Shown: in pieces, positions 11,461-57,049 of the stretch
Position numbering within the stretch: position 1 is the stretch's first letter
How the letters are laid out: each line of letters starts with the position of its first letter
NCBI GenBank assembly: GCA_028023455.1
Contig: JAQFVV010000006.1
Coordinates: 13,516,001 to 13,580,000 of the forward strand
Length of the DNA: 64,000 nt
Origin: Epiperipatus broadwayi
Lineage: Eukaryota > Animalia > Onychophora
Reading direction: 5' to 3'
Program-made: the position numbers and the translations under genes
The notes under the pieces: generated by a model
Databases searched by the model: none
Told to the model about the DNA's origin: nothing
The model's input: only the letters and a program-made list of their open reading frames with translations

Positions 11461-11967
11461 TAGATGGTTCTGCAGCGTCACCTGGTGGCCACAGTACATG
11501 TCACCGAACACTACCTTTTATTAAATCATGTAATTTCTAATATCAATTCTTCAATTTCAAATTTTTTTACAATACAGAATCTCGGAAAGTATTCAGATGA
11601 GGGTTTTGATGTCAAGCTGTTATCATATCACTCTGCCATCATTTTTGGTTGACTGATGGCAGGGAATTATGTTTCTGAATATTATTATAGGAAACGAAGC
11701 GCTGAGTTTTTGGTATGAAAACACAAATTTCAATATATTTGGCTTGGTGGGAAATTTATCTCTGCTTCCCGATTTGAATAAATTTGTGAAATGTTTTGAC
11801 ATAACAATTTGCTTCAAATATTATTGCGGCAGAGTGATATTTTCAAAATCTGGTAGATTTATTGAATGTATAATAGCTAAATCGTTGGCAAACCTGATAC
11901 TAATGTACTATAATAAATAATAATTACTATTGTAAATATATTAAATTTATTAAGCACAAGCAGGTGA

Positions 11968-12163
11968 TAATAATAATATGGAAGGCTGAAGCCTCTACCA
12001 GATGCGCCTTAAAAATGCTTATGTGACAGCCAATCAGATGTATTTCTGGCTTATGTTTTTGAATTGAGTTCCACGGGCAGTCTTTATTACATCTGATTGG
12101 CTGTCACATAATCATTTTTAAGGTGCATCTGTCAGAGGTTTCAGCCTTCCACGTTATTATTAT
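11968..12163. mobile_element. MITE with ~75-bp TIRs
   Basis: ATAATAATATGGAAGGCTGAAGCCTCT...GACAGCCAATCAGATGTA is inverted as TACATCTGATTGGCTGTC...AGAGGTTTCAGCCTTCCACGTTATTAT. Confidence 0.85.
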
Positions 12164-23073: not shown

Positions 23074-23252
23074 TTTATAAACACTTGTTTGTAGAAAAGG
23101 ACTGGAAGGGAATAACCATGAGAGTCCCTTAACTTGTGGAGACCCTGTATAAGTGCTATTGGTGAATTCGCAAGCAGCTCTGAAGACATAGTTCATATAC
23201 AATATATATTATCAGCATAGTTTACTCCTTTAGTATTGCAATATTATATGCC

Positions 23253-23620
23253 AATAAACATCACACGATCACTATTTCTTATGCTTGCTCTTAACTGTTA
23301 TTAAAACAGGCAAAAATCTATACATATTGCCATTCAGTGCAAGTCAGATCCATCAATGGATGCCAGAAGACTTGTGCATAAAATCCCCATTTAGTGCCCA
23401 CTCATCCAATATCCCCAAACTAGTTTCTGACTTGTGGCCTTTGTCAGTGTTCTCAGATCCAAGATTCCTCACTGACAAAGGTCACAAGCCAGAAACTAGT
23501 CTGGGGATATTGGATGAGGAGGGACTAAATGGGGATTTTATGCACAAGCCTTCTGGCATCCATTGATTACTCTGGCTTGCACTGAATGGCAATACGTGTA
23601 GAAAGTTTTGCCTGTTTTAT
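23253..23620. mobile_element. Family R head-to-head foldback insertion
   Basis: Reverse copy 23253-23463 followed directly by forward copy 23464-23620; both include the HHR motif. Confidence 0.88.
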
Positions 23621-25256
23621 ATATTATATACTGTAACTTCTAAATTGAATACTGAATTAAAAGAATTTCTTGCTAATATTTTTTTTTAATTTACTGTAAC
23701 CAGCAATAACACTTGTTCATCATCGGTAATACATGGCATTCATTGTTTATCACATCTTTTTAATTTATTCTAACAATTCTATTTTAGAATTACGTCCATC
23801 CTTCGAAAAGATTCAAATATAATTTTTTTTTCATAAATTGTTTTATATATTTGTTTAAATATTACAGTAATTAATTTTAATTTTACAACTTATCCAACGG
23901 GAAAAAACACTTAATTAAACTCATTTGTGATTAAGCTAAAATATAATTAGATTTTGTAAGTAATTTTTAATCAGAGTTCTTAATGAGCTAGTTATTTAAG
24001 GATACGCTGTGGTTTTTTCCTCTCTTTTTAAGAGGTTTTTAATGATTTCCGATTTTGTAAATAATTTTAAATTATAAATATTATTTATCACTATATCTAC
24101 TATATACAAGCGATATAGTTTTAGTTTTTTTTATCTATTGATATGGTCAAAAGTAAACAGTATTAATCTGATTATATCTTGTGAAGTCAGATACGTGTTA
24201 CGAAATTTTAAATGTTCCAAGTACAGTATTTGTAAAGTAGGTTAATGAGATAAACATTTTAATTTGTAGGATGTTGTTTCTAATTCTCTTAATAAAATAT
24301 CAAATCTTTGCCTGAAATAATTATGCTGTTATTTTGAAAATGCATTCTCGGTGTTAATTATTAATAATATAGAATTATTGATTTTGTTTTCAGTACAGCG
24401 TATATATATATTGCAAATACTCTTGACACCAGACTATTCCAAGCGAGTTTTTAAGAAGTTATCACTTAAATAGGTCTGGGATTTTGAGCTACCGAAAATT
24501 AGTTAAATTCATACGATGAAACTTGGGTAGATGCTGTTTCTAATGAAAAATGGGTTTAAGAAAAATTAGTATCTTCAAAAAACAACAACAGACTATTTAA
24601 AAAAAAGATGCTGAAATTTTCCCAATAATGATCGTGTCGTATTTATAGTTTTATATGGGACAATTCCATTGGCAGTATTAAATTGATAAATATTTTTAAA
24701 AACAAACTTTTCCAAATGCATTGAATTGTTAGTAATGAGTACACATTAATATAGAACAATGTTTTAAGTAGTTTTTTTCTTTCTTAAGAGATTGCTGACT
24801 TGACCAATAGTGACAGTATTATCTCATTTGAACTAGTAGCCTTCAGATTTAATACTGAATTTAAGATGGCATTTCAACTTTCTAGACAATTTTGTCAAAG
24901 GCAACAGTCTGTAGAAATTTCATATATCTATGAAGGTAGTCCTGATTTCTCCAGTTTTTTCTTAAGGGGTCAGTTAAAGAATGGTTTTCATACATGAATT
25001 ATTGCATTCGATTGGCTTATGGGGTTATTTGCCATTATTGTGTGAGCACTTCTAATTTTTTTTCTCTAATATTTTTTTTTCTTTTGCCGAATGTAGTAAT
25101 ACGTCTTTTTTTTTTTCATTTCTAATTATCAGTTTGTGCTCTATTAATTGCTTCTCAATGGTGAAGTTGATTTCAACAATATATATCCTTCCATATTCAC
25201 ATGGTATTTTATAGATTCAATTTTTGCTTTTCATTATTTCAAATTTAGGTTTTAAA

Positions 25257-25588: not shown

Positions 25589-27524
25589 ATTTAGGTTTTA
25601 TAAAGGTTAGGATTCATCATAATGTGCGATGCTTTGGAAAGCTGGTCTGATGATATATTGATTGCAGATTTTTTTTTAGTTTGCTATCCTTGACATTTAT
25701 GGAAATATTGCAGTACCTATAATTAAAAGGGCATAAATTGATGATTAAGAAAGAAAAAAATAGATGTATCTAAAATAGTGGGCAATGTGTGTATCAAGGA
25801 ACGTGTTCATTTAGAAAAAATGATAAAAATATTGGACAGATAACTTGTAATGTTTGGAAAATAGTCATTAACCTTATTCTTAAGAAAAATCAAGAGGATT
25901 TTCATCATAGATATGTTTATGAAATTTCTATTGACTGCTTTTGACAGAATAGCTAAATTAGGTCACTGATAGGATCAGCAACATCTGAAAAAAAAAGAGA
26001 AAAGTAAGTCATTTATGTTGTGTCAATATTAACTTATGTGTTAATATTATGTAGACTGCATTTGAAAAGTTTAAAGTTTTAATTATTCCAAAGTTATTTG
26101 GCAGTTAAAATATATCTGCAAATCTAAAATGATTTAGAAATTACTATTATTCTTGATATCACATATATTCCAATTTTTTAAACTTACCGAAAATTTTGAA
26201 GATGGTATAGGTTTTTTTAAATGTAATTTAATTGATGAAATAGCAATTGTACACTTTTTTACTAATTTCATTATGTCTTCTATCACCTGATTTGTAAAAG
26301 TATTAATCACAGCTATTATATATATATAGGATATAAAAAAAAAAGAAATTGCATAATATATTTCTCATGAATTCATAAGAACTTTATGCATCAAAAGTGG
26401 CAATCCGTTAAGTTAGAATAGAGTTTACTATGAGGACACCCAATTACTCGGCTATATGTTGAATAAAAATCTCTTCCTAATCTATAAAAACTATTTACAC
26501 AAAATAATTTGTCATTGAATTACTTTCTTTGTTATTTAGTCTCTTTTATTATTACTCTTTTGCCCAGTGAGATTTAATTCTGTGGTTAGCAGATTCATCA
26601 ACCAAAGGTTCCTGGATTTTGTTGCTTAAACATTATATTACCTCCTGAACAATTATTCATTCAGTTATTTTTATAATATTATTTTGCTTATCTGCTGTTG
26701 AGTAAATCCAACTTTTAAATTTATGTAAAATTTTAATTAAATGTTTGTAAAGAAATGGTAGCAAACTGATAATGTAACTTTTTTTAACCACTTTTTTTTT
26801 TTATTGTCATTTACATAATTAATGCATTACAGAGTTATACTTTATAATATTATTATAAATGAGTGCATTTAAGTACCCTCTAGTAGCTTATTATTTAACT
26901 AAGATATGTGTTATATATAATAACCAAATTCTGACATATAAGCTATGACAATATATGCTCATAGAAACAGTTTCAAGGGAATCCCTTTCATCAGCTACAC
27001 TAAGCCCCGTGATCACTAACCAAAATAAAGAAAAGACTAAATACAATCATTTATGATAATATTATAAATAGTTTAAGTAAGTTTACACATTTTATTCAAT
27101 TTATATGTTATTAGAATAGTCTGCAAGCATTTTTTGTATATTGATATTGAGTACAGGATTGTATTGGAAATGTATGGTGTGTTGAATGTGGCATCTCATT
27201 TGTGGTTTATAACAGGGTTACCTACCATCAATTCATATCTATAATACATTCCTCAAAATTTTGATCATTTATTAAATGATTTTAACTTTCTATTTGTTGA
27301 TTTATTCAGATCTCATAACCGATTTTTGATATGTTTCCATCAAATGGATTTTCTTCAAATTTTGTGCACATTAGGTATCAATGGCAATACGATATAACAG
27401 TGAAATATTTCAGAGTTGATTCCAGTCTAACAGTATTAGCAGGTCAAATTTCAAAATGCATCACATCAGTTCAATAAGTTTTTAATGATATTCTCTAGAT
27501 GGCAATATATATATTTTTAAATAT

Positions 27525-27710
27525 GCAGAAGATTTGGATAAAGAATTTATGTCAGTATACTTGTACAAAAGGTGGGATGATTGTGTTAGGAGAATTATTG
27601 AGTATTATAATGGCAAGGAATGGGGTAAAAGAATAGATGCATTAATAAAGAATAGGGTGTTGCAGAGATGGAGAATTGCTATGGAGAATAAAAATAGTTT
27701 ATATATATAT
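27525..27710 (+). mobile_element. CCHC-type LINE, left half of a split copy
   Basis: KRWDDCVRRIIEYYNGKEWGKRIDALIKNR matches 33960-34135; ends at a (TA)n tract. Confidence 0.85.
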
Positions 27711-28193
27711 AAAAATTCAGTTATATATAGATTGATATGTGGATGCGGCGTACAATACATTGGTGAATCTAAGTGTACATTTGAGAAGAGAATAAAAGAA
27801 TTCAAAAAGAGAATCAATATGGAACAGATATAAATAAACCTTCATCATCTGTTATATTTGATCATAATAAATCTTGTCAATATGGATTTAAATTTGATTA
27901 TAAAAATATGAAAATTATTCAAATTGAACGTTGTCATAATAAACGTAAAATAAAAGAGGCTATGTTGATTTCAAGAAATCGTCAAATGTTAATGAATCGC
28001 CAGTCATCAAATGTTAAGATAACAGAATTGTGGGAAATCTGAATTGAACTATGGGTATTGTTAAGGGTTGTCTTGTTTTGATTATTCAATATTATATAGT
28101 TGATAAAGACTACAAAGTGTATAGTCGAAAGTACTTCTAAAAGATTATAATTTATATAAATTGTACTGTATTTTGATATATATATATTGATTT
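27711..28193 (+). mobile_element. PLE-B: 5'-truncated Penelope-like element (GIY-YIG + 3' UTR), continuing at 31435-31493
   Basis: SVIYRLICGCGVQYIGESKCTFEKRIKEF, one frameshift, then GTDINKPSSSVIFDHNKSC...KRKIKEAMLIS...ITELWEI* (stop ~28042). Confidence 0.85.
28097..28139 (+). ncRNA. Minimal type I hammerhead ribozyme with U3-A8 core (PLE-B)
   Basis: TAG-TTGATAA-A-GACTA-caaagtgta-TAGTC-GAAA-GTAC-TT-CTA: 3-bp stem I, perfect 5-bp stem II, palindromic stem III AAGTACTT. Confidence 0.75.
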
Positions 28194-28290
28194 CCAAAAC
28201 TGTCTAACACTATACTAGCAAAAAATAAAAATGCAAAACCATAAAACAATACAGTACTAGATTAAATTCAAAATTTTACCAAAATCCTTA

Positions 28291-28333
28291 CACAACCATG
28301 GTTTCATCTACTACAAATAGACCTTCTCAAGTG
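28291..28333 (-). ncRNA. Minimal type I hammerhead ribozyme, U3-A8 core (PLE-A left arm)
   Basis: Mirror copy of 31332-31374. Confidence 0.68.
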
Positions 28334-28389
28334 AAAATCAACCTAAAGGAAAACATATATATATACAAACAAACAAACCTTCCCATAAT

Positions 28390-29814
28390 TCATTTCAAAC
28401 TCCACCTTCCCTTAATATCAAAAGAAGTCTTCATAAGATTGATAGCCTCAGAATCAAGGAGTTTTATCATCAAAGTCTCCTTTATTCTTCTTTTTAACTC
28501 ATTCTTTTCATAAAAAATAACCGAAGCATTGTCAAACAATATTCTATGACCTGTATTCAATTCATGAATATATAAAGCTGAGTTAAGATACCTATGTTTA
28601 ACTCTACTTATATGAACCTTAACCCTTTCCTTAAGGCTAAATTTACTCTGGCCTACATAAAATTTACCACAACTACATGGAATTTTATAAACAATACCAG
28701 GAATAGACCTACTATCAATAGACTGCTTTGAACCATTAAGTAATGAATTCAAATCAGAACCTTTCCTCCATGCAACCTTCTTTCCACCTAACAAATGACT
28801 ATTCCTATAAACCAAATTATAAATTGATGCTTTAAATGGTAAAGACATATAATCATCATCCTTACCAACAAAATTCTTATCATCCAAATCACGACTATAA
28901 ACATTATTATTAAATACCACTTTTTTAATAAAATCATGACTATAACCCAATTCTACATATTCAGCAGCAAATTGACTTTTTTGAATATCAGCATCATTAT
29001 TAAAATTATTAAGCCTTCTATTCCGACAACAAAAATTCAACAAAGACATTTTTTTATGTATAAAAGGCTGATAACTATCAGGCCTAATCATATTTCTCAA
29101 ATTTTTAGGTTTTATAAAATGACTACAAAACAAAACATCATTAACCTTCTCAACATTTAAATCTAAAAACTTTAATTTTACAAAATCAAAACCACCCCCC
29201 TCAATTGTAAACTTAATATTAGAATCAAAACCATTCAATCCACATAAAAACTCTTCTAATTTCTCTTTCTGAATAACAAACAAACAATCATCAACATACC
29301 TAACAAATAATTTAATAGAACCTGAAAACATATTAATAATACTACACTCCAAATAATCAATATAGACAGCACACATCAATGGAGAAATGACATAACCAAT
29401 AACCCAACCTTCTCTAATCTTATAAAACACATCATTAGACATAAAATACATTGAATCCTCTAACAGCAAAAGCAAATCATGAAAAACCTTAATCTTATCT
29501 GCAGAAAAACATTCTAATTTTTTTAAAATTGAAAGAAAAACATCAATACTTTTTAATCTATTAACCGATTGGTACATATTTTCAATGTCTAAACTACCAA
29601 AAACACAATCATCATCCAAAACAAAACCATTTATTTTCTTAAAAGCTTCAAAGGAAGAAGAAACACAAAATTGACCCAGTTTTATGTAATCCTTAAAATA
29701 TCTTATAATAAATTTTGATATTTTATCAACAATTCCTCCTGTAAAATCAAAAATACATCTCAAAGGAAAATTATCTTTATGAGACTTCAAATTAAAGAAA
29801 ACCTTTGGAGCCAC
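28390..29814 (-). CDS. Penelope-like RT + GIY-YIG endonuclease, 5'-truncated (474 aa, no ATG start)
   Basis: KSHK..PLR.I, SLDIENMY, SPLMCAVYIDYLE, RYVDD, FLDL, GIVYKIPCSCGKFYVGQS...ER...H...HELNTGH...R.IKE. Confidence 0.92.
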   Translation of the reverse strand: MAPKVFFNLKSHKDNFPLRCIFDFTGGIVDKISKFIIRYFKDYIKLGQFCVSSSFEAFKKINGFVLDDDCVFGSLDIENMYQSVNRLKSIDVFLSILKKLECFSADKIKVFHDLLLLLEDSMYFMSNDVFYKIREGWVIGYVISPLMCAVYIDYLECSIINMFSGSIKLFVRYVDDCLFVIQKEKLEEFLCGLNGFDSNIKFTIEGGGFDFVKLKFLDLNVEKVNDVLFCSHFIKPKNLRNMIRPDSYQPFIHKKMSLLNFCCRNRRLNNFNNDADIQKSQFAAEYVELGYSHDFIKKVVFNNNVYSRDLDDKNFVGKDDDYMSLPFKASIYNLVYRNSHLLGGKKVAWRKGSDLNSLLNGSKQSIDSRSIPGIVYKIPCSCGKFYVGQSKFSLKERVKVHISRVKHRYLNSALYIHELNTGHRILFDNASVIFYEKNELKRRIKETLMIKLLDSEAINLMKTSFDIKGRWSLK

Positions 29815-31275
29815 AAAATCACTAGGGTAACAATTCTGTTAATTGATTTTGTGGCTCCAAAGGTTTTCTTTAATTTGAAGTCTCATAAAGATAATTTTCC
29901 TTTGAGATGTATTTTTGATTTTACAGGAGGAATTGTTGATAAAATATCAAAATTTATTATAAGATATTTTAAGGATTACATAAAACTGGGTCAATTTTGT
30001 GTTTCTTCTTCCTTTGAAGCTTTTAAGAAAATAAATGGTTTTGTTTTGGATGATGATTGTGTTTTTGGTAGTTTAGACATTGAAAATATGTACCAATCGG
30101 TTAATAGATTAAAAAGTATTGATGTTTTTCTTTCAATTTTAAAAAAATTAGAATGTTTTTCTGCAGATAAGATTAAGGTTTTTCATGATTTGCTTTTGCT
30201 GTTAGAGGATTCAATGTATTTTATGTCTAATGATGTGTTTTATAAGATTAGAGAAGGTTGGGTTATTGGTTATGTCATTTCTCCATTGATGTGTGCTGTC
30301 TATATTGATTATTTGGAGTGTAGTATTATTAATATGTTTTCAGGTTCTATTAAATTATTTGTTAGGTATGTTGATGATTGTTTGTTTGTTATTCAGAAAG
30401 AGAAATTAGAAGAGTTTTTATGTGGATTGAATGGTTTTGATTCTAATATTAAGTTTACAATTGAGGGGGGTGGTTTTGATTTTGTAAAATTAAAGTTTTT
30501 AGATTTAAATGTTGAGAAGGTTAATGATGTTTTGTTTTGTAGTCATTTTATAAAACCTAAAAATTTGAGAAATATGATTAGGCCTGATAGTTATCAGCCT
30601 TTTATACATAAAAAAATGTCTTTGTTGAATTTTTGTTGTCGGAATAGAAGGCTTAATAATTTTAATAATGATGCTGATATTCAAAAAAGTCAATTTGCTG
30701 CTGAATATGTAGAATTGGGTTATAGTCATGATTTTATTAAAAAAGTGGTATTTAATAATAATGTTTATAGTCGTGATTTGGATGATAAGAATTTTGTTGG
30801 TAAGGATGATGATTATATGTCTTTACCATTTAAAGCATCAATTTATAATTTGGTTTATAGGAATAGTCATTTGTTAGGTGGAAAGAAGGTTGCATGGAGG
30901 AAAGGTTCTGATTTGAATTCATTACTTAATGGTTCAAAGCAGTCTATTGATAGTAGGTCTATTCCTGGTATTGTTTATAAAATTCCATGTAGTTGTGGTA
31001 AATTTTATGTAGGCCAGAGTAAATTTAGCCTTAAGGAAAGGGTTAAGGTTCATATAAGTAGAGTTAAACATAGGTATCTTAACTCAGCTTTATATATTCA
31101 TGAATTGAATACAGGTCATAGAATATTGTTTGACAATGCTTCGGTTATTTTTTATGAAAAGAATGAGTTAAAAAGAAGAATAAAGGAGACTTTGATGATA
31201 AAACTCCTTGATTCTGAGGCTATCAATCTTATGAAGACTTCTTTTGATATTAAGGGAAGGTGGAGTTTGAAATGA
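29779..31275 (+). CDS. Penelope-like RT + GIY-YIG endonuclease (498 aa; the first ~22 aa come from the antisense left arm and spacer)
   Basis: Same motifs as the minus copy; the ATG at 29779 lies in the left arm and reads through the spacer in frame. Confidence 0.92.
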   Translation: MRLQIKENLWSHKITRVTILLIDFVAPKVFFNLKSHKDNFPLRCIFDFTGGIVDKISKFIIRYFKDYIKLGQFCVSSSFEAFKKINGFVLDDDCVFGSLDIENMYQSVNRLKSIDVFLSILKKLECFSADKIKVFHDLLLLLEDSMYFMSNDVFYKIREGWVIGYVISPLMCAVYIDYLECSIINMFSGSIKLFVRYVDDCLFVIQKEKLEEFLCGLNGFDSNIKFTIEGGGFDFVKLKFLDLNVEKVNDVLFCSHFIKPKNLRNMIRPDSYQPFIHKKMSLLNFCCRNRRLNNFNNDADIQKSQFAAEYVELGYSHDFIKKVVFNNNVYSRDLDDKNFVGKDDDYMSLPFKASIYNLVYRNSHLLGGKKVAWRKGSDLNSLLNGSKQSIDSRSIPGIVYKIPCSCGKFYVGQSKFSLKERVKVHISRVKHRYLNSALYIHELNTGHRILFDNASVIFYEKNELKRRIKETLMIKLLDSEAINLMKTSFDIKGRWSLK

Positions 31276-31331
31276 ATTATGGGAAGGTTTGTTTGTTTGT
31301 ATATATATATGTTTTCCTTTAGGTTGATTTT

Positions 31332-31374
31332 CACTTGAGAAGGTCTATTTGTAGTAGATGAAACCATGGTTGTG
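31332..31374 (+). ncRNA. Minimal type I hammerhead ribozyme, U3-A8 core (PLE-A right arm)
   Basis: CAC-TTGAGAA-G-GTCTA-tttgtag-TAGAT-GAAA-CCATGG-TT-GTG: stem I CAC/GTG, 5-bp stem II, palindrome AACCATGGTT in stem III. Confidence 0.68.
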
Positions 31375-31509
31375 TAAGGATTTTGGTAAAATTTTGAATT
31401 TAATCTAGTACTGTATTGTTTTATGGTTTTGCATATATTGATTTGTATATTACATATTTTGTGAAACGAATACAGATATCAAACTTTATTTATTATATAT
31501 ATATATATA

Positions 31510-32012
31510 CAGAAGTAAACAGAATATTGGGTGTGAATTAATTTATGATAATGGAAGGAAAATAACTTACTATTTAAGACTCGAACAGGATTTTTAACAA
31601 CAATGGAATATAGACATAAATGGAAAAATGTGGTTGATGTAGTCTGCAAGTTGTGTAAGGAAGGCATAGAAAATATTAGGCATCTGTTAATTGAATGTAA
31701 ATACCTGCAAGCAGAAAGGGTACAAATAATGAAGTTGTGGAAGAATAAATATAAATAAAGTGATTATACAGAAAGTAGGTTCTTAGTTTTTATGCTGGGT
31801 TTGGGAAAAGATAAGGGGGATTTAGATATAAAGACCATAGAGTTGACAAAGATTATGTTATGGAAATGGGCTGGAGCAGGATAGAGAAGAATATGGGAAA
31901 AACTTAGGGTGGAGAATAGAAAGGGAAGGTAAAGTGGCTAACATGTTTCTCTGGGCATAGTGGCTGAGAGATTCCTGACTCCGAAAAAGGAGAAGTCAGT
32001 GCATTGCATCAC
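31510..32012 (+). mobile_element. CCHC-type LINE, right half of the split copy
   Basis: Resumes at AGAAGTAAA, exactly where 27710 stops relative to the uninterrupted copy at ~34139; encodes CKLCKEGIENIRHLLIEC; 3' end GAGATTCCTGACTCC...GCATCAC. Confidence 0.85.
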
Positions 32013-34890: not shown

Positions 34891-35009
34891 GAAATTCATA
34901 GGAATTATTTAAATAAAGTGGATGAATTAAACAATGTCCAGCAGAAATGCATGAAGGAATTGGCCCACCATCAATATCGCATGAAACAAATTTCCGATTC
35001 ATTAAAGAA
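34891..35009 (+). CDS. TMEM120: TMEM120 homologue, internal coding exon (probable exon 2)
   Basis: poly-T ttttag|GAA...AA|gtgaga; EIHRNYLNKVDELNNVQQKCMKELAHHQYRMKQISDSLK; 119 bp, phase 0 to 2, matching the next exon. Confidence 0.88.
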
Positions 35010-35204
35010 GTGAGAAACTTTATACATGATATAATTGACAATATATATATATATGTTGTTGTTTTTAATGTTATAGTAGCTTTTGGCATTTGAATGTAAT
35101 TTTTTGTATACTTTCCATATTCTAATAATTTTTATATTGGAGAGCAAACAATGTCTGGAAATTATATGATGGCTTTTCTCCAAAATGATCTATCGTGAAC
35201 GGTT

Positions 35205-37074: not shown

Positions 37075-39790
37075 TTTCTAAAGGTCTGTGATGATGGTAT
37101 TTTTGTTTATATTTATATATTGGATTATTTCCGTCATTTAATATTAAGTATTGAATGTCTTTAGAAAAATTTAACTTCATTTAAATCTTCCAATTTCATT
37201 CAACTGTTAAAATAATAGCATACAGGTTAGTATATGCAAAACTTTTCAAGAGGTATTATCCTTTTCTTCAAGGGTTGTTGGCCTGATGAGTGACACTAGC
37301 ATGAGAATCAAACCTGGATACTTAGATTTAAAGTAGAAACCCATTTAACTTTCTTCTGTAAATATAAGTCTAAAGGGATAGTTCCTAAGGATTTGCAATT
37401 AAAACTTCCCATTCTCTCCCAGAGAGTTGAGAAAATTAGTCAGAGAGCAAGTGAAACTGTTAAGAGAAAGAATAAATGGTCAACGGTTTTCCATGTGTCA
37501 AACCTTGCATTCCACTAATAATGTAGAATGTTTTCTAAAAAATAGACTAACTAATGAAGATTTCACAAGAGTTTCTTAAACAGTAAGACAATTATATTTT
37601 ACATTATATGGAAAAATAAAAGAATGCCAAAAGAAGAAACTTGTTGAAAGTCATAATGTACCAAGCAGTGTATCAGCTTCATCTGCGAAGAGTCTCAGTT
37701 CTAAACATTTACAGATGATGACATTTCTGGTCTTGAAAAAGGATTAAACTTGCCAATAACACTGTCTAATAACCTATTATTAGATATAATGGCGGCCCCC
37801 GAGAAAGTCACTCAAAAATTGCCTTTAGAAGAAGCAGCAGAATTACGCTGGAGAATAAAAAGAACACTTGAGAAGCAACAAAAATGGAAGTCAAACATAT
37901 CTTATGATAAGAGGAAAGCAATTAAATCTCTCAAAGTAAATAAATCTCTTGATTATCTCCCTGCTGACAAAGGCGATGCAACAGTTGAAATGGATACAAC
38001 TGATTATGACAACAAAATACAAGAACGCCAACAGGCCAATACAGGAAAGTGGCAACAAATTCAATACCAAGTACAGAAACAAAATTACAAACATTACGCA
38101 GAAAATATCACAGTTATTTCAGTGATTCAGAAAAAGTAAATTAACATCATATTACAGTAAAATTTCTCATCTCCATAAGGATCATGTTTCATTAAGACCT
38201 ATTGTTAATTCTACAAATTCACTTTGCCAAAATTTGTCATGATTTTTTCTCAGTCCTTTGGCATGCAAGACCATGTTTTTGTCAGAGATTCAAGACTCTT
38301 TGTAGAAGTAATCAAGAACATGAAATTTTGAAAGAACTGACTTACTGGTAAGCTTTGGTGTGGAAAGTTTATTGACAAATGTACCCTGTGAAGAAACATT
38401 GTCTATTGTAAAAAAACGATTCAATGGTGGTAATGGCTTACAAACCAGAACAACACTTCCTATTGATGGTATAAAGGAACAACAACTTACATCACAGAAT
38501 TCTTCCACTAAAGTCAAAGAATGGCTTTGGACTCACCATTATCACTCCTGATTAGCAATATTTACATGGAAGAACTTGAAACCACAATCATGAAAACTAC
38601 TCCACATCCATCTAAAATTTGGCTTGACTATGTTGTTGATGCATTTAACACCTCAACAACATATCATCTTCAATTAAATTCACAGTAGAATTAGAACAAG
38701 AACAAAAATTTGCATTCTCAGATGTTCTTGTAAAAAAACTCCCTCATGTGTAAAATCAAAACTACAGTTTACAGAAAACCCATATATATAGGAAAATACA
38801 TAGCATGTACATCTAATCACACGAGAAGTGCAAAACATGGAGTTATACTATCCATATGGAACAGAACAAAAGAAGTTTGTTTAGAAACCAGCGATTTGAA
38901 ACCAGAAAAGATCTATATAAAACAAACTTATAAAAAATGGTTATCCCTCAGCTTTTATTAAGAAAACATTAAATTTCAACAGAAAGAACCATTAAAAGAA
39001 AAAAGTTATTTGTATCGTAGTGTATCCATACATAACAAAAATAGCACAAATTAAAGAAAATCTGCAATCAGTATAACATCACAACAGCTTTCCAGAGCCA
39101 TACCACACTACGAGGAATTCTAACATCTACAAAGCTAAACTTGAAATGCTGTAAATAAAAACTACATTTATGAAATACCATGTGAATGTGGAAGAATGTA
39201 TATTGGTGAGACTAGTTACCCCATTGAGAAGCGATTGCAAGAGTACAAACTGATGATTAGAAGAGAGAAAACGTGTCTAAGATAACAGACTATGTGTACC
39301 AATGCATACATTCAATTGGGAAAATACAAAGTATTTGATGAAGAGGAAAAGATACAAAGAAGAAAATTCAAAAAAGGTTTCTCACATGATGATGGAGAAT
39401 AATCCCATAAATCAACTAGTGTGACTATACATAATGTATTGAAACCAGTAATGAACTTTGCTTTTAGGAAAAAGTGAAGAAATCAAGAGTAATCTCATAC
39501 ATAAATATATGAAATTTCTACTGATAGTTTCCTTTGGGAGGATGGCTCAGTTGGTTAGAGTGTTATCTTAAAATTTCAATACTCAAGAATCTATGGATCC
39601 AGGTTCGATTTCCATGCTAGTACTGCCGCTGGTCAGGCCAGCAACATCTGAAGAAGAGAGGAGAATAATATCTCCCTAAATGTTGTGCATATACTAACCT
39701 GTATGCTATTACTAACAATTGTATGTAATTGGAAGATATAAATAAAATTAAATTTTTCTAAAGACATAAATAGTCCAATATATAAATAGA
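37075..39790 (+). mobile_element. PLE-C: decayed near-full-length Penelope-like element with an inverted 5' terminal segment
   Basis: Fragments HLTFFCKYKSKGIVPKDLQLKLP, LPADKGDATV, SLLTNVP, TTVYRKP...SNH and YIYEIPCECGRMYIGET. 37075-37330 is the reverse complement of the 3' end at 39590-39785. Confidence 0.88.
39540..39620 (+). pseudogene. tRNA-Leu-like sequence in the PLE-C 3' terminal repeat
   Basis: Aligns to 13357-13436; A and B boxes present; followed by a decayed HHR (CTGAAGA at ~39648). Confidence 0.68.
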
Positions 39791-40452
39791 ACTAAAGTGA
39801 ATAATGATTTAATGTACATGGGGAGATGGGAGGGAGAATATTGAACGTTAATTTTTTGAATGTATTTATTGAAAGATGATTGGGATAAATTGTAAAGAGA
39901 ATGGAAAAAAAATGAAAGTGGGGAATATTTGGGTAGCTTAGAGAAACTAATAAGGCAATTTTTATTAGATTGGGATAGAAGGGAAAAAAAGAAAGAAATT
40001 TTGACTGAGAAAATGATTCGGTATTAAGGACTAAGAATCAAATCTGTTTATTGTATTCTGTAACAGTTTCAGGGATGAGAATATTTAAGTTGAACTTGGT
40101 AGTAAGGAATAAGGATTTAAGCAGGTTTTCTATGTTATGCAATTGTTTTAGGAGCGAATGTTTGATTTGACTGACAAGGTTTCTGAACATACAGTCTGTA
40201 GAAGATAAATTTCATTTCATCTAAGGGAAGGATATTTTGTACCATATCATATGCTTTGCAGTAACATTTAATAATTTTAAAGGGAGTTCATGTTTAATTT
40301 TGCTAGCAGGATTTCTTGGAATATAATTTGTCCCGAAATTTTCACTTTGGTCTAAGTAACCATTTTACGTTACACTATGTAATCTTTCTGCAACATCTCT
40401 TAAATTTATTAAGATTATTGTTACTAATATCGCTAAATTTTTATTATTTCAG

Positions 40453-40725
40453 ATTATATCAGTCCGCAACAGAAGATGACAAACAAAAAATACAAGAACT
40501 CAATGGTCGAATTCATTCAAAGAAGCACCTTTTAAATGAAGTGAAAGAGAGTCTTCCCAAAACAAATAGTTTGTATCTTAAAATCATATTGGGGAATGTT
40601 AATGTGTCTATTTTAAATCGAGAAGACAAGTTCAAATATAAGGATGAGTACGAAAAATTTAAATTTGTCATCATCATTGTTACGTTTGTGTTATCTTTCA
40701 TAAATCTTTTTCTGCTTAAATACAG
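40453..40725 (+). CDS. TMEM120: TMEM120 homologue, coding exon
   Basis: tttcag|A...AG|gtaagc; LYQSATEDDK...LPKTNSLYLKIILGNVNVSILNREDKFKYKDEYEKFK...FLLKYR; 273 bp, phase 2 to 2. Confidence 0.95.
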
Positions 40726-41045
40726 GTAAGCACAATTACTTTAATCTCGTTTGTTTTTTTTTAAATAAATATTTTATATATCTATTTGGTAAGCATAGCA
40801 TTTTGGTTATTAATCATTCCATTTTAAATCGTAGACATTAAATGAAGAGGGCCCCATGCCCTTCTCTTTGCTTGACTTTCTATTTACAATGCAGAAGTTT
40901 AATCCCATTCCTCTCGACCATAGTTTTTTTTTAATCTTTATATCATTTCATAAATTTTCTTATTTATCTATCTCGCATGTGATCTTTCTCTAGATGTTTT
41001 ACAGTCTTTTGAGTTCAATGTAGGATTTATCCTATATATTTAGTT

Positions 41046-41115: not shown

Positions 41116-41573
41116 GCCAAATAAATGTTCTTTTCAGGAAAATATCTTTATGCATTAGCATAGCTAAATAACGGAAATTGAGAGAAATCTTTGATATGAC
41201 AGAATAAGAAAATCATCAAGTCATAAAGATGCTACGTATGAATAGGATAGCAGGAAGAAATTTATGACATATTATTAGATAAAAAAGCAAAAGATATTAG
41301 TAATTACCTGAGATTTATATACATCGTTAATCTTATGAATGAAGTCTTTAAATTCCCATCTATTATTTCATTATTTAACTAAGATATTTCTGAACTGTGA
41401 ACTATACACAACTCATACAATCGGTTTCAAGAGAACCTACTAATTACGACTATAGTATATATTTCTGTTTAACTCAAAATAATCTGTTACTATCGTGTTA
41501 ATAAATTAAAAGAGTTACAATAGATTCATTTAAATAAATGATTTAGTAAAAGAAATCTTTAATTTTTTTTTAG

Positions 41574-41663
41574 ATTTATGGATGCTGCTTTTCATTTTCT
41601 TCTTGTATGGTATTATTGTACACTAACGATACGAGAAAGTATTCTTATTGTCAATGGATCAAG
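41574..41663 (+). CDS. TMEM120: TMEM120 homologue, coding exon
   Basis: tttttag|A...AG|gtaaga; [30 protein letters not shown] (diagnostic [13 protein letters not shown] motif); 90 bp. Confidence 0.97.
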
Positions 41664-42019: not shown

Positions 42020-42430
42020 GGTAACACAAATGCGATGTGATGCGCTGTGACTTCTCCTTATATGGAGTCAGGAATCTCAGCAACCTGTTAGCTACTTTAT
42101 CTTTCCTTTCGATTCCCCACCCTAGTTTTCACATATCCTGCTCCATCCCATTTCCACAACATAATTTTTGTCAACTCCATGTTTTTTATATCTAAATTCT
42201 CCTTTTCCCAAACGCAGCATAAAAATCACTAACCCACTTTCTGTATAATCACTTTCCTTGTACTTGTTCTTCCACAACTTTATTATTTGTATCCTTTCTA
42301 CTTTCAGGCATTTACATTCAATTAACTGGTGCCTAATATTTTTTATGCCTTTCTTACACAACTTGCAGCTTAACTCACCCCCTTTTTTCCATTTACATGT
42401 ATAATACCCTGTTGCTAAAGATCCCGCCAA
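42020..42430 (-). mobile_element. CCHC-type LINE 3' fragment
   Basis: Minus-strand ORF GSLATGYYTCKWKK...CKLCKKGIKNIRHQLIEC. Confidence 0.85.
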
Positions 42431-42899
42431 AGGCAAAATTCCATATAGTAGCACCACTCAGTGCATGCCAGAGTAATCAATGGATGCAGGAAGGTTTGTG
42501 CATAAAATCCCTATCTAGTTCCTACTCATCTAATATCCCCAGACTGGTTTCTAGTTTATTGCTTTCATCAGTGAGGAGCCTTGGATCTGAGAGCATTGCT
42601 CTAGATGTTAGGAGCTTGAATTGAAAACATTATTGTGTTTTCATTTTGGACTCAAAGCTTTTATAGTTAGCTAATAAAATAAAATGTGGCTTTTGGAGGG
42701 TTACATTAGATCCTAAGATCTAGGTGCAGTGCTCTCAGATCCAAGGCTCCTTACTGATGAAAGTCACAAGCTAGAAACTAGTCAGGGGACATTGGATGAG
42801 TAGGAACTAGATAGGGATTTTATGCACAAATCTTCCTGCATTCATTGATTACTTTGGCTTGCACTGAGTCACGCTGCTATATGTAGAGTTTTGCCTCTG
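42431..42899. mobile_element. Family R head-to-head insertion
   Basis: Reverse copy 42431-~42617 and forward copy ~42618-42899; HHR cores at 42536-42577 (-) and 42750-42788 (+). Confidence 0.88.
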
Positions 42900-43860: not shown

Positions 43861-46649
43861 TAGTCGTGGAGGGACCGTACTGCCGCTGTCAGATGGCGCT
43901 GCGACACCATCAACAACCGGCCCGAAGCCTGCAAGTCATAAATTTATATACGAAAGTGGCTGAAAATTGACAAATAAAAATGCCTGAGGCAATATATATC
44001 CAAGAAATACATCGAACATACAAATTATAAAAAAAAAACACAAGAAAATCCTATAAAATTCAAATTAAAAAAAAAGAAATCGATAAAAATACACAAACTA
44101 AGAAACATGGCAGAGAGAGAGCGGGAAATCCAAAAACATCACATTATTTACCTTTCAACATTTGCAAATATGAATTGGCAAATTAAGTATTTTTCAATAT
44201 TTGCAAACGATCAGATTTAAAAGCAACAGTTATATAAAATAAAAAGAATATTACTGGTTTGAAATTATGGCATCTCATCCAAAACCTACCCCCTCCCCCA
44301 ATGAAGAATTTCTATCCAAAAATAACTGAAATGGGCAAATTAAATCAAACAAATACTTCTAAAATACAAATAAAAAAAATTCGATCAAAAATAATTAAAA
44401 TCAACGGTTATATAAACTAAAAAGAATATTACTGGTTTGAAATTATGGCATATCATCAAAAATAAGTCAGACGTAAAACCTACCCCCTCCCCCATTGAAG
44501 AATTTCTATCCAAAAATAACTCAAATTATTTAGCTTTAAAGCAATTAATTGTTATCTGGTTTTCAAATTATGGCATATTTAAATTGATCAATAATATTTA
44601 AATAATTAAAAAGCAATACACAAAAATAATTACCAAAGTCCTTCCAATCATTTGTAGTAGGCACTTGAATGTGTTCAGCATAAAAATCCATTAAGAAGAA
44701 CATTATGTTGATTTAGAATTTTGAAGCTTTGAACACACTTGAATAGTAACAGAAGATTAAGTAATGATGGTTATTTTGGGTAAAAAATATGGCAGAATTT
44801 TCTTTGAACACACTTGATGGCATTTACACAATTATGAGTTTCTCAATATCCTGCCTTGTTTACAACTCTTCTTTAATTGAAATAATCAAATAATAAATGA
44901 TTCTTCAGCATTTTGACAAAGAGAAATGATTTGCTTTAAAATATACTTTAGTATCATATTCTGGTAATTATATATAAGATGCATATTGCATTACGTTTTA
45001 TTTAAACAAAGTTGCAAATTGAAATGTGACGTAATAGCTTTTTCTTACATTAAAAAAATATAGGCGCAAACAATGTACTTCCATAAAATATAACACGCCA
45101 ATGCAATTCAAAATACAAAATGATTTTTCAGCATTTTGTCAAAGAGAAAATATTTTTTTAAAAATATACTTTAGTAAAGTATATTTTGCAAAATGCTGAA
45201 AAATCATTTTGTATTTTGAATTGCATTGGCGTGTTATATTTTATGGAAGTACATTGTTTGCGCCTATATTTTTTTAATGTAAGAAAAAGCTATTACGTCA
45301 CATTTCAATTTGCAACTTTGTTTAAATAAAACATAATGAAATATGCATCTTATATATAATTACCAGAATATGGTACTAAAGTATATTTTAAAGCAAATCA
45401 TTTCTCTTTGTCAAAATGCTGAAGAATCATTTATTATTTGATAATTTCAATTAAAGAAGAGTTGTAAACAAGGCAGGATATTGAGAAACTCATACTTGTG
45501 TAAATGCCATCAAGTGTGTTCAAAGAAAATTCTGCCATATTTTTTACCCAAAATAACCATCATTACTTAATCTTCTGTTACTATTCAAGTGTGTTCAAAG
45601 CTTCAAAATTCTAAATCAACATAATGTTCTTCTTAATGGATTTTTATGCTGTACACATTCAAGTGCCTACTACAAATGATTGGAAGGATTTTGGTAATTA
45701 TTTTTGTATATTGCTTTTTAATTATTTAAATATTATTGATCAATTTAAATATGCCATAATTTGAAAACCAGATAACAACTAATTGCTTTAAAGCTAAATA
45801 ATTTGAGTTATTTTTGGATAGAAATTCTTCATTGGGGGAGGGGGTAGGTTTTACGTTTGATTTATTTTTGATGATATGCCATAATTTCAAACCAGTAATA
45901 TTCTTTTTAGTTTATATACATTGCTTTTAATTATATTTGATCAAATTATTTTTATTTGTATTTTAGAAGTATTTGTTTGATTTAATTTGTCCATTTCAGT
46001 TATTTTTGGATAGAAATTCTTCATTAGGGGAGGGGGTAGGTTTTATGTTTGTCTTATTTTGCATGAGATGCCATAATTTCAAACCAGTAATATTCTTTTT
46101 ACTTTATATAACCGTTGCTTTTAAATCTGATCATTTGCAAATATTGAAAGATACTTAATTTGCCGATTCATATTTGCAAATGTTGAAAGGTAAATATTTT
46201 GATGTTTTTGGATTTCCCACTCTCTCTCCGCCATGTTTCTTAGTTTGTGTATTTTCATCGATTTCTTTTTTTTGAATGTGAATTTTATAGCATTTTCTTG
46301 TTTTTTTTTTATAATTTGTACTTTCGATGTATTTCTTGGATATATATATCCTCAGGCATTTTTATTTTTCGCTTTAAGTCAAGAAAGCTTGATTTTAGGG
46401 GGGGGGGTAGGTCTTTCTCGTATTTTCGTGGATTGTTTTTTTTTTAATTTTATAGCATTTTCTTTGTTTTTTTTTTTTTATATAATTTGTACTTTCGATG
46501 TATTTCTGGGATATATTGCCTCGGGCAATTTTATTTGTCAATTTTCAGCCACTTTCGTATATAAATTTATCACTTGCAGGCTTCAGGCCGGTTGTTAATG
46601 GTGTCGCAGCACCATCTGACGGCGGCAGTACGGCCCCTCCACGATTACC
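43861..46649. mobile_element. 2.8-kb foldback element (arms ~43861-45138 and 45189-46649)
   Basis: Termini TAGTCGTGGAGGGACCGTACTGCCG / CGGCAGTACGGCCCCTCCACGATTACC. Inner arms are near-identical with few mismatches; outer arms have indels. No ORF. Confidence 0.9.
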
Positions 46650-47320: not shown

Positions 47321-47970
47321 CTTTCTGACTTGTGGCCTAGAGCCTTGGATCTGAGAGTACTGCACCTAGATCTTAGGACCTAATGCAACTTTCCAGCAGC
47401 CACCTTTTATCTCTAATTAACTACAAAACTATGAGTCTTAAATTGAAAACACCATAATATTTTCAATCCAAGCTCATTAGCTTATATAGTCATATTAATA
47501 ACAGTTTTGAACAAGCGCAAGAAATGGTGATCATGTGTTGTTTATTGGCTTAAAACCAATCCTGCCTAATAGGATAGTGGTGGCTATGGTTATTAAAGAA
47601 CCAAAGACACCAAAATATATAGGTACTGAACTGAGTTCAGACCTATATGACTATATAAGCGAATGAGCTTGGATTGAAAATATTATGGTCTTTTCAGTTC
47701 AAGACTCATAGTTTTGTAGTTAAGTAAAAATAAAAGGTGACTGCTGAAGGGTTGCACTAGATCCTAAGATCTAGGTGCAGTACTCTCAGATCCAAGGCTT
47801 CTCACTGATGAAGGCCCCAAGCGATGGGGATTTTATGCACAAGCCTTTTGCATCCATTGATCACTCTGGCTTGCACTGAGTGGCAATACATATTGAGAAT
47901 TTTGTCTGCTTTAATAACAGTTTTGAGGAAGCATAAGAAATGATGATCATGTGATGTTTATTGGCTTAGT
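47321..47970. mobile_element. Family R: reverse fragment plus a forward copy longer than one monomer
   Basis: TAATAACAGTTTTGA...GTTTATTGGCTTA occurs at 47496 and again at 47912; a ~38-bp internal deletion removes GAAA and the HHR cleavage site. Confidence 0.88.
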
Positions 47971-49045
47971 AATATCGTATGTAAAAATAAAAGTACTTTG
48001 GGCAGTTTATTCAGTTGAATAATTAATGGGAGATAGCAAGTTAGACTATAATTTCTGGTGGAGAGATTTGGTAACTCAGCTGAGCTGATGATTGGACAGT
48101 TATTTCTTGAAATACAGGGTACCCCCACTGAAAAGATTACTGTTTGTCACTCCAAGATGTCTGTGCACTATCTCTGAATCAATGCATTTGCTACATAGTA
48201 ACATAGCTTAGCTGTTTACCACAAATTTTAAGATGTTAGAGAATCTGCATCATGAGTTTCGTATCTTCGTAGATCATCTTTAATGATGTCCTTACCTTAA
48301 CAAAATCTTGTGAACCGTTTGAATCATTTCAAGCATTTCAGTAACAGTTTCACATAATTTAAAACAAAATGTAATGTTAGCGCATTGTTTTATTATGGAT
48401 TAAATAAAAAACACAATATTACATTTTATGTTGGAACTTGTGGCCTGATGTGTTGATGCATTAAAACTTCATACATCGATACAAAGATGGTGCTGCAGGT
48501 ATTTTGAAGAGAGAACCAATTACCTTTCCACTGGGACGTGCTTTGCATATATATTGAGAAAGTCAGTCTGTTGTCTTTTATTGATATCTTATGCGATTAT
48601 AAAGTACAAATCGGGAACATTGTGAATTCATTTGATTGTTACATACTTGAAGCACAGTGCTAATCGTTCAATATATTGACAGATGTTTCGTATTTTTATT
48701 CACTTAGAGGAAATTGGGTTAGAAGCTTGAAATGTTTTCAGATTTCATTAACGTAAATTTTCACGTTATTGTATTTCTGTGCTCCTACGGGAAAGTGATT
48801 TATAATTTTCAGTTTCTGTAATTTATTTCACACACATTTTTGAAAATTTAGCTTTGGGACACCAATTACCTTAAAGGCATGCAGTCATTAAATACAAAAA
48901 TTTTAATATAAAAAATTATATATTAAATAGGAGAGATATCTGTATGATATGTGTTGATGAGAATTGATTTAAATAATGAAAATTTTTTCATTCATTAATA
49001 ATATTATATACTATATGTTTTTTTTATATTTTTTTTTTCTTTTAG

Positions 49046-49111
49046 AATTAAAGGATGGTGGTTGGCCCATCATTACATTTCTACAGTCATGGCAGGCATT
49101 CTTTTGATCTG
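49046..49111 (+). CDS. TMEM120: TMEM120 homologue, coding exon
   Basis: tttttag|A...TG|gtaatg; IKGWWLAHHYISTVMAGILLIW; 66 bp. Confidence 0.97.
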
Positions 49112-49542
49112 GTAATGTCTTTTATTTATGTACATATAAAATATTTACTTACATTCTTTAATAAATCAATACTAGTGTATTGTAAATACCAAAGTTTAAG
49201 ATGTAATTAAAGGGGATTTGAACACAGACTTTTTTCCTTCAGCTATCCATTCCCTCTTATGTAATCGATATGCATGTCCACACATGTGAAAACGATAAAC
49301 AAGCTCCAATATACATATTTCGTGCTAAACTACTACTCATCAGTTGGTCTATATCATCTGCCACACATATATATAATCAGTTTTTATTAAGATAGCAAAT
49401 CTTCAAACTTTAATGGACAGGCTTCAATCTTCTCTCCTCTCCAACTCTTCAGCCATCCATACCATTGAAAATCTGATGATGAAATGCTGAAACTCTTGAT
49501 AATGCCAATATTGTCGTCATATATAAAGCTATTAAACAGGCG

Positions 49543-49785: not shown

Positions 49786-50001
49786 TAATGCTCAGTGATA
49801 GATAGATCTATCAATGTAAATACATAAAAACCATGAACACTTAAACAATATCAATGACAATCGACAATTCCATTTAACAGTAAGGATGGTCTAATGCTCA
49901 GTGATAGATAGATCTATCAATGTAAATACATAAAAAACATGAACACTTAAACAATATCAATGACAATCGACAATTCCATTTAACAGTAAGGATGGACTAA
50001 T
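49786..50001. repeat. Near-perfect 106-bp tandem duplication
   Basis: TAATGCTCAGTGATAGATAGATC... starts at 49786 and 49892. Confidence 0.9.
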
Positions 50002-50007
50002 ATGATT

Positions 50008-50262
50008 GTATAGACACTAAATATTGTCACTTGACTATAGAGAGTGAAATTATTAATTCAGAGAAGTTTAAATAAACCTTATTAAACAGGTAAATATAAA
50101 CCTGTTCTGAAAGTAGATTAACAAATAATCAATTATAATTTTCAAACTGCTTTCTAACCATGTATTAGTTATATTTACCTGTTTAATGGGATTTATTTAC
50201 ACTTCTTTGAATTAATAATTTCACTCTCTGTAGTCAAGTTGCAATCTTTTAGGGTCTGTATA
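50008..50262. mobile_element. MITE with ~85-bp imperfect TIRs
   Basis: TATAGAC.CTAAA.ATTG..ACTTGACTA.AGAGAGTGAAATTATTAATTC...AAACAGGTAAATATAA is inverted at 50175-50262. Confidence 0.8.
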
Positions 50263-50289
50263 AAGATATTAGACCATAGATAAAGGTGG

Positions 50290-50748
50290 ATTTCCACCTT
50301 TATTGTTAAATGGAGGTTGCCTTGCCAACAGATTGGGATGGTTGATATTGATATTGGTGTAGTTTAAATGTTGACTGCTTTCAACCAACAATCTCAATCT
50401 GTTGTCAAGGTAACCTTTATAATTAAAAGGAGGTTTTCTCGACAACAAATTGAGATTGTTGATTGTTATTAATATTGGTATTGTTTCAGTGTTGACTGCT
50501 TTCAACCAACAATCTCAATCTGTTGTCAAGGTAACTTATTGTTAAAAGGAAGTTGCCTTGACAACAGATTGCGATTGTTGATTGTTATTAGTATTGTTAT
50601 TGTTTAAGAGTTGACTGCTTTCAACCAACAATCTCAATCTGTTGTTAAGGTAACCTCCTTTATTGTTAAATAGAGGTTGCCTTGACAACAGATTGCGATT
50701 GTTGATTGTTATTGATATTAGGGTAGTTTAAGTGTTGACTGCTTTCAT
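50290..50748. repeat. Tandem array of ~120-bp units, each containing a ~32-bp-stem hairpin
   Basis: GTTGACTGCTTTC at 50370, 50491, 50610 and 50734; hairpin CAACAATCTCAATCTGTTGTCAAGGTAAC-loop-GTTGCCTTGACAACAGATTG.GATTGTTG. Confidence 0.88.
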
Positions 50749-53700: not shown

Positions 53701-54609
53701 ATTTATTGGACAAAGAAGTGCTTTTCTTTATAAAGTTATCCACATAAATGATAGTGTCAAAAATGAAATATTATTTTACTTATATATTACTTACACCACC
53801 AGTAATTTCTCTGTGATATATTGTGATTTCCATTTTTTTCTCTTTTGTTTTCTAGCATTTTATTCTTTGTCTTTTCTTTTTTGTTTTGACTTAGAATGGT
53901 GGTACTTGCTTACACCAATCGCTGCTAATGGTGATCGTTACTTTCTAAAGATCACTAGACAACCGGAAAAGAAGAGACTTACTGAATAAACATTAGTCAG
54001 TGTAAAAAGCCACTTCTAAATGAATATGGACATTGCAACATAAAAAAAAACAATTGTATTCTATTCTCAAATATATTTCTTGAGTTTGTAGCTTTCCTGG
54101 CATGATATAAAACAAGAGTAGCTATCTGCTCTAGCGCCATCTATAATGGGCTTGAGTAATCTGATGATAATTGATTTCTCGGAGCTATTTACAGATGGAG
54201 GTGAAGCAAAGATTTGATCTTGTTTATTCTCATACATACATGCATACTGGGAAAAAATAAATGGAGTTAGAATTACAGTTTGCATGATTAAAAACTGGAA
54301 ATGTGGTTACACATACTATTCCACTTTTATGATCAATGCAAAGAGACGATATGAAAGGCCTACTGTGATCAGCTCTCTCCTAATCTAAATGACTGAAAAT
54401 AGTACGGTAAAAAAATTTATATTAAAGAGAATAAGAGGAAAAGCATATTGAGGAGACCAGAAATGATGTTTATATGGGAAATAGTACTAATATTATGAAG
54501 AGAAGGCAAATCACTGGGAAGATCAATTGTTTTTATCGATTCTGAAATGACCATTTGCTTAGTTTGTTTACTTCCTCTTAGTTTAGCAAACTTAACTATA
54601 TACTGATTA

Positions 54610-55558: not shown

Positions 55559-55624
55559 ATATACAGGTTAATATAAAATGTGTGTAATTCACCAAAAAAA
55601 ATTAATCTTTCTGTATTTTTTTTT

Positions 55625-56987: not shown

Positions 56988-57049
56988 GCCAGATGGTGCC
57001 AGGTACCAAAAATTTCGAAACCAGTTTATGCTGCACCAATTATACATGA
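56988..57049 (+). CDS. TMEM120: TMEM120 homologue, coding exon
   Basis: ttttacag|G...A|gtaaga; PDGARYQKFRNQFMLHQLYM; 62 bp, phase 2 to 1. Confidence 0.96.

Follow-up and report, generated by a model that had tools for sequence, protein, structure and literature searches.

How does a genome come to hold a palindrome of about 3.2 kb whose two halves are perfect reverse complements of each other, and is such a structure a genuine insertion or a product of the assembler? The question is raised by a Penelope-like element (PLE) in Epiperipatus broadwayi, present twice and head to head in the window analysed here, a stretch of 64,000 nucleotides (nt) from assembly GCA_028023455.1 (contig JAQFVV010000006.1, positions 13,516,001-13,580,000 of the forward strand; all coordinates below are positions in this window). 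We consider it probable that the locus is real and represents a very young, 5'-truncated PLE insertion, produced as a head-to-head fold-back in one retrotransposition event, and the second arm was most likely copied from complementary DNA (cDNA) within that single event.

An earlier note on this DNA had described a near-perfect palindrome with identical arms and a 22-nt spacer, and exact self-alignment bore this out: a repeat search and an exact string comparison gave two arms of 1591 nt each (28231-29821 and 29844-31434), 100% reverse-complementary and 22 nt apart, with complementarity ending at the outer edge of both arms in a string test. The 3' ends of both PLE copies point outward and their truncated 5' ends meet at the centre. 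The target site duplication (TSD) of 10-12 bp and the one-sided tail that had also been described are present as well, the former as a 10/10 repeat of ATATTGATTT (up to 12 nt when the final AT of the right arm is counted in) and the latter as 37 nt on the left only. The left copy extends 14 nt further 5' than the right one, so that the spacer consists of 14 nt of element sequence and an 8-nt filler, CTGTTAAT. Fold prediction of the centre gave a continuous stem, in which the filler and positions 29828-29832 form a 5-bp mini-stem with a 4-nt loop (TAACA, ATTC, TGTTA). The motif CAAAAC lies 1-3 nt inside both the start of the tail (28195) and the start of the arm (28234). The insertion target is a stretch containing (TA)n, located within a high-copy repeat ~150 nt beyond the end of the open reading frame (ORF) of a decayed older PLE, whose endonuclease part lies upstream of the palindrome (27720-28039, + strand; tblastn identity 25-34%). 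Both flanks of the palindrome (27474-28169 and 31650-31997) are very high-copy, with a summed contig depth of up to ~2.8 million versus ~22 for the single-copy contig at 32299-32500.

Judged by its predicted protein, the element is a PLE with the canonical order of reverse transcriptase (RT) followed by GIY-YIG endonuclease. The ORFs at 28390-29814 (- strand) and 29851-31275 (+ strand) are open and identical, each coding for 474 amino acids (aa) with YVDD at residue 173 and GIVY...FYVG at residues 373-388. The Pfam profile RVT_1 matched with an E value of 9e-7 (29.3 bits, slightly below the curated cut-off of 29.6). The Pfam GIY-YIG profile gave no score on the ORF itself at E values up to 1; residues 373-447 align to residues 716-784 of relative P0005, within the Pfam GIY-YIG match of that protein (714-790). 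The 13 database relatives are all RT proteins sharing the same Pfam domains, at 29% identity or less (only 22-28% for the closest), and the ORF aligns at 22% identity to residues 339-814 of the 817-aa relative P0007, with YVDD falling on the YVDD of the relative. Because ~340 N-terminal residues are missing, the copy is non-autonomous. The claim that both ORFs are open with YVDD and GIY-YIG residues in place thus stands for motifs and frames but has to be qualified, as the ORFs are 5'-truncated (the P0007 alignment starts at residue 339): they are "intact" only in being unmutated since insertion, and neither copy can encode a complete protein. An exact-protein look-up of the 498-aa ORF that spans the centre of the palindrome found no record. 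Rfam revealed no hammerhead ribozyme in the window (gathering score, E values up to 5), nor is a CTGATGA...CGAAAC core found on either strand; in PAc this ribozyme sits at the start of the pseudo-long-terminal-repeat (pseudo-LTR)/ORF (PMC11167929), and the part bearing it may just be missing from the truncated copy.

The boundaries of the insertion are defined by contigs assembled from the reads of four public sequencing runs (X1, X5, X6 and X7). Fifteen contigs (14 of X1 and one of X7) first match exactly at 28194 behind other TA-rich flanks, and since these flanks differ, the tail is the own distal 3' terminus of the PLE family. Empty-site contigs of X1 join 28184 to 31435 (also 28179 or 28185 to 31433) and hold a single copy of the TSD sequence; these sites are probably paralogous, as the flanks are high-copy, yet they define the insertion boundaries. 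In X5 and X6, contigs agree with the left copy without mismatch from 29425 and 29654 to 29835 and then diverge, their continuation keeping the frame open. Since they run on past 29835 in an open frame, longer copies of the family exist, and since they match the family up to 29835, the spacer splits into 14 nt that are part of the left copy and 8 nt of filler. Ten arm-to-arm joints among those listed are each the centre of another head-to-head pair of this PLE family, with other truncation points, and the two arms differ in length by 11-25 nt in six of the ten and by at most 48 nt in seven (chance probability ~2e-7). Near-symmetric fold-backs at many truncation points exist in the reads, independently of the assembler.

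The window itself contains seven further short-spacer palindromes of 0.2-2.4 kb, with 78-94% identity in self-alignment. Those at 23302-23619 and 54607-55521 belong to one non-coding family, and each extends ~40 nt beyond its arms on one side, the left side in the first and the right side in the second. At 23302-23619 the match to the family sequence continues for 27 nt more in the tail-less arm than in the tailed arm, and the junction lies on a 5-nt overlap, CAGTG/CACTG, as would be expected if a cDNA 3' end had annealed to a short antisense-cDNA stretch and been extended. This family was probably mobilised by PLE machinery, with the same architecture as the PLE palindrome.

In light of these structures, the sequence of events can be proposed as follows. 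The GIY-YIG endonuclease of the PLE would nick the TA-rich target with a 10-bp stagger, and the 3'-OH of the + strand at 28193 would prime reverse transcription at the distal start site of the RNA, thereby producing the tail; the plus strand of the left copy indeed reads as a first-strand cDNA attached to that 3'-OH. First-strand synthesis would have run for ~1.6 kb, to 29835, where the cDNA 3' end could have paired a few nt back with antisense cDNA of the same RNA and been extended to the proximal start site, giving the second arm: in the sequence, 29835 is followed by 8 nt and then by an exact cDNA copy from 29821 back to 28231. Two variants can be envisaged. A single cDNA may snap back on itself, an endonuclease cut at the tail boundary then fixing the end of the arm, or a dimeric enzyme may prime two cDNAs on one RNA at sites 37 nt apart, and the 3' ends of these cDNAs may then anneal, each serving as template for the other. 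The sequence would fit snap-back and a second cDNA on the other nicked strand equally well. Purified PLE protein cleaves and extends both strands of AT-rich targets and starts reverse transcription from two adjacent internal sites, the tail being the stretch between them (Frangieh et al., 2024; PMC11167929). The motif CAAAAC shared by both termini fits these two start sites known in vitro, and the right arm may end where the other nicked strand provided a second primer, not where synthesis ran off. The mini-hairpin at the centre is weak evidence that copying started at the very tip and then slipped. The longer arm is on the tail side in the PLE palindrome and on the tail-less side at 23302-23619. 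A rule that the tail-side arm is always longer was considered as a test of pure snap-back and discarded, since 23302-23619 shows the opposite and both variants accommodate either. Twin priming was rejected because it needs different segments in the two arms, which here are the same 1591 nt, and template switching during replication after insertion because it would not yield a TSD with 3' ends at both sides.

Several observations weigh against this reconstruction. No microhomology is present at the centre of the palindrome, only the 8-nt filler, and snap-back by itself leaves the exact stop of the second arm at the proximal end point unexplained. A 68-nt query over the centre, sampled by only two 31-mer words, was matched by no run, X1-X4 included, and among the contig matches listed none spans the centre or the flank junctions. 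Runs X1-X4 hold 0.8 of the words of 27600-32000, a share for which paralogs alone could account, and the contigs of X5-X7 derive from paralogous or longer copies, not demonstrably from the palindrome locus. Contig depth could not serve as a test for two copies, because the PLE family and both flanks are high-copy. In principle, gene conversion rather than youth could maintain the identity of the arms.

These points bear first on the suspicion that the palindrome is an assembly artefact, either with real flanks and outward 3' ends and a mis-joined or collapsed centre, or as a whole fold-back from chimeric reads. The unmatched centre words would agree with this, the high copy number of the family favours mis-assembly, and tandem and inverted PLE structures are known to trouble assemblies (PMC8557442). 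A fold-back chimera, nonetheless, would repeat the same flank in inverted form, whereas the right flank here continues the empty-site sequence with the second copy of the TSD; the same architecture, with centre junctions of its own, occurs in read-derived contigs of other copies, and older, diverged palindromes of this architecture lie within the window. The case made earlier against a plain fold-back artefact, from the TSD, the asymmetric tail and clean nesting, is therefore upheld, as the flanks are contiguous in the empty-site contigs and complementarity stops at the arm ends. The reality of the locus rests on the TSD with its distinct flanks, on the family-wide series of junctions and on the older palindromes nearby, and we regard an artefact as very improbable.

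Accepting the insertion as real, its symmetry could also have been inherited from a palindromic master, if the read-through transcript of an existing head-to-head pair had been reverse-transcribed end to end. Identical arms and a tail on the priming side only would result from this as well, but the two sampled centre words were matched in no run, with no sign of sister copies, the many different centre positions across the family fit fresh formation at each insertion, and copying across a perfect RNA hairpin of 1.6 kb would presumably be hard, so that such an origin appears very improbable. Even less probable is a pair of independent primings, from separate RNAs on the two nicked strands, with stops that happened to lie close together and were joined by host repair. 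In vitro, cleavage and extension do take place on both strands, and a one-sided tail is accounted for by two start sites (PMC11167929), but two stops without any link would seldom lie as close as 14 nt in 1.6 kb, or be no more than 25 nt apart in six of the ten listed joints of the family, and the zero differences between the arms are what a single template is expected to give. The reading of a single event, with the second arm copied from cDNA, is therefore retained below.

As for age, the 0 differences over 1591 aligned positions limit arm divergence to less than ~0.19% at 95% confidence, and contigs of other samples match the PLE family at 99-100%. The insertion is very recent, as had been proposed, given these arms and the perfect TSD. 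Runs X7 and X8, which bear a second organism label, hold 0.5-0.6 of the words of 27600-32000, and contigs of X7 differ from the arms at 0-2 positions per 100-430 nt; the young PLE family is common to two labelled taxa, or else one species goes under two names. Long identical arms with a short spacer make the most breakage-prone kind of palindrome, and a 12-bp spacer stalled replication in eukaryotic cells where a 52-bp spacer did not (PMC7999016), which backs the general statement that near-perfect long palindromes are unstable. By analogy, fragility of the present palindrome with its 22-nt spacer is plausible. The seven older palindromes of the window, with identities of 78-94%, indicate that such structures persist and decay.

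The features of the window are collected in Table 1. In the 2.4-kb palindrome listed there, neither similarity to PLE proteins nor a TSD was found, and its arms contain no ORF that reaches 70 aa; the one at 42428-42899 is related to the non-coding family of 23302-23619 and 54607-55521 and has unequal arms of ~186 and ~288 nt. Sub-threshold Rfam matches to microRNA precursors of plant and animal families occur at 42495-42830, 45060-45267, 50291-50464 and 23420-23499, mostly on the centres or arms of palindromes; they look like false positives caused by hairpins rather than microRNA genes.

Table 1. Positions of the parts of the PLE palindrome, of the TMEM120 exons and of the older palindromes in the 64,000-nt window (UTR, untranslated region).
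Feature	Position	Strand	Remarks
Left TSD copy	28184-28193		ATATTGATTT, 10/10 match to right copy
PLE tail, 37 nt, distal 3' end of left copy	28194-28230	-	no counterpart beside right arm
Left arm, 5'-truncated PLE copy	28231-29821	-	3' UTR 28231-28389, ORF 28390-29814
Extension of left copy inside spacer, 14 nt of element sequence	29822-29835	-	X5/X6 contigs match through 29835
Filler, 8 nt	29836-29843		CTGTTAAT, matches PLE family on neither strand
Right arm, identical 5'-truncated PLE copy	29844-31434	+	stop 31273-31275, 3' UTR 31276-31434; ends at proximal end point without tail
ORF, 474 codons, RT core (YVDD) and C-terminal GIY-YIG endonuclease	29851-31275	+	without ~340 N-terminal residues
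Right TSD copy	31435-31444		ATATTGATTT, perfect 10 bp
TMEM120/TACAN exon 2, ~residues 24-64	34891-35010	+	behind splice acceptor; match to solved protein/relatives
TMEM120 exon	40478-40708	+	best tblastn match; residues 73-157 of solved protein align in stop-free 40307-40726
TMEM120 exon	41569-41661	+	match to solved protein/relatives
TMEM120 exon, residues 186-210	49044-49112	+	match to solved protein/relatives
TMEM120 exon	56989-57111	+	match to solved protein/relatives
TMEM120 exon	60633-60740	+	match to solved protein/relatives
Older palindrome of non-coding family, with extension	23241-23629		9-bp direct repeat ATATTATAT at 23241 and 23621
Older palindrome of non-coding family, with extension	54607-55565		extension on right
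2.4-kb palindrome	43969-46370		~94% self-alignment identity; inner arms 44409-45143 / 45184-45918, 98%, 40 nt apart
Short-spacer palindromes, 0.2-0.5 kb	42428-42899, 47341-47799, 49992-50277, 11967-12163		~78% identity

The host gene nearby is TMEM120, whose introns measure 0.9-7.9 kb. Its exon 1 (~23 codons) was sought between 15.0 and 34.9 kb by tblastn with 46 near-full-length relatives and by a scan of ATG-started peptides of the + strand, with noise-level candidates only. From the end of the palindrome it is 3.5 kb downstream to exon 2, so that the palindrome is placed in intron 1 or else in the gene's 5' flank. A loose contig end at 32375 (X7) was considered as a splice from an upstream exon and rejected, as its 30 letters do not occur in the window and no AG lies at the site. 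A second decayed PLE (37750-39363, + strand) lies in an intron of TMEM120, the one flanked by the exons at 35.0 and 40.5 kb; it comprises an N-terminal-like ORF (37750-38139), a segment with an RT motif (38324-38548) and what is left of a GIY-YIG domain (39166-39363).

The only plausible activity of the truncated copy would be as a source of double-stranded RNA (dsRNA), if it is transcribed. A role of the locus as a hairpin-RNA source of small interfering RNAs (siRNAs) that silence its own PLE family, which would add to the proposed origin and not replace it, seems doubtful. A perfect inverted repeat of 1.6 kb would fold into dsRNA if transcribed through, and the PLE family is present in runs labelled as RNA, but the contigs of these runs leave the locus at 29835 into longer copies, with no transcript assigned to the locus, and TMEM120 exon 1 was not located. 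The idea of silencing by long inverted Penelope copies is already published: in transformed D. melanogaster, rearranged copies with long inverted repeats were described, with siRNAs that map exactly to the inverted regions but did not silence the element efficiently (Evgen'ev, 2013; PMC3681739), and in Adineta vaga the polarity of small RNAs switches at inverted Penelope halves (PMC3846280). The palindrome can be regarded as a candidate dsRNA source.

Taking the coding family together with the non-coding palindromes and their one-sided tails, we tentatively suggest, as one possibility, that PLE machinery regularly makes near-symmetric fold-backs in this genome, and that the locus preserves the junctions of the second-strand step and may feed siRNAs directed against its own family. 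If this holds, these junctions would comprise the distal and the proximal start, on opposite sides, together with a 14-nt offset and an 8-nt filler. How PLEs complete integration is still an open question (PMC8557442; PMC11167929), and an unmutated insertion with both ends, tail, centre offset and filler offers a clean natural record of the process. The series of junctions with offsets of 11-25 nt makes the fold-back a habit of the family and no one-off, and for annotation it follows that, in this assembly, palindromes that are perfect over kilobases are best interpreted as products of PLE insertion.

Compared with known systems, the locus is closest to the canonical endonuclease-bearing PLEs (Penelope of D. 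virilis, Poseidon PAc of Anolis, Pen2a of Adineta vaga). It shares with them a single ORF that encodes RT and then a C-terminal GIY-YIG endonuclease domain, and it shares the form of the insertion: truncated at the 5' end and paired head to head with an inverted copy, with a tail of 30-40 bp on one side only and a short TSD, in an AT-rich or microsatellite target. PLE insertions are strongly 5'-truncated, often with an adjacent inverted and 5'-truncated copy and with a tail of 30-40 bp at one end only, they are biased towards microsatellite targets, and their structures trouble assemblies (Craig et al., 2021; PMC8557442). In contrast to the canonical elements, the insert described here is just two equal truncated arms of 1.59 kb, without a full-length unit or a direct pseudo-LTR. 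Published examples usually have an inverted piece of ~0.2 kb beside a longer unit, unlike the equal arms found here.

In a rotifer, inverted copies with 8-10-bp TSDs and a 31-bp tail were described, and the palindromes located at their inverted junctions were taken as a sign of self-priming (Arkhipova et al., 2013; PMC3846280). The likeness to this self-priming, and to hairpin-primed (snap-back) second-strand synthesis, lies in a cDNA 3' end that loops back, or anneals a few nt upstream, and continues synthesis with cDNA as its template, so that the resulting inverted duplication is nearly symmetric and has a short loop; here the two arms are offset by 11-27 nt. That study (PMC3846280) argued for self-priming on an antisense template, while the present data are also met by ordinary priming from sense RNA followed by a switch to cDNA. 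The sharp proximal stop, on the other hand, sets the locus apart from plain snap-back and calls for one further event, either a cut by the endonuclease or priming at a second site.

L1 twin priming, whose inversions were reportedly described by Ostertag and Kazazian in 2001, likewise uses both target strands as primers and leaves an inverted 5' segment in the product, but it joins different, adjoining parts of the element, whereas both arms here are the same part. Inverted-duplicate transposon loci are also known as triggers of silencing, as in Mu killer of maize and the hairpin RNA (hpRNA) loci of Drosophila. The palindrome resembles these loci and the inverted Penelope copies in that coding sequence of a transposon is repeated in inverted form, perfectly and over a long distance. 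The earlier interpretation of a PLE palindrome formed by one recent insertion and nested in an older repeat is thus retained, but not its view of the structure as unusual, since such structures have already been published (PMC8557442; PMC3846280; PMC11167929). Every structural feature of the locus has a published precedent, which makes it a new member of a known phenomenon, and what is distinctive here is the length of the arms, their exact symmetry and their zero divergence.

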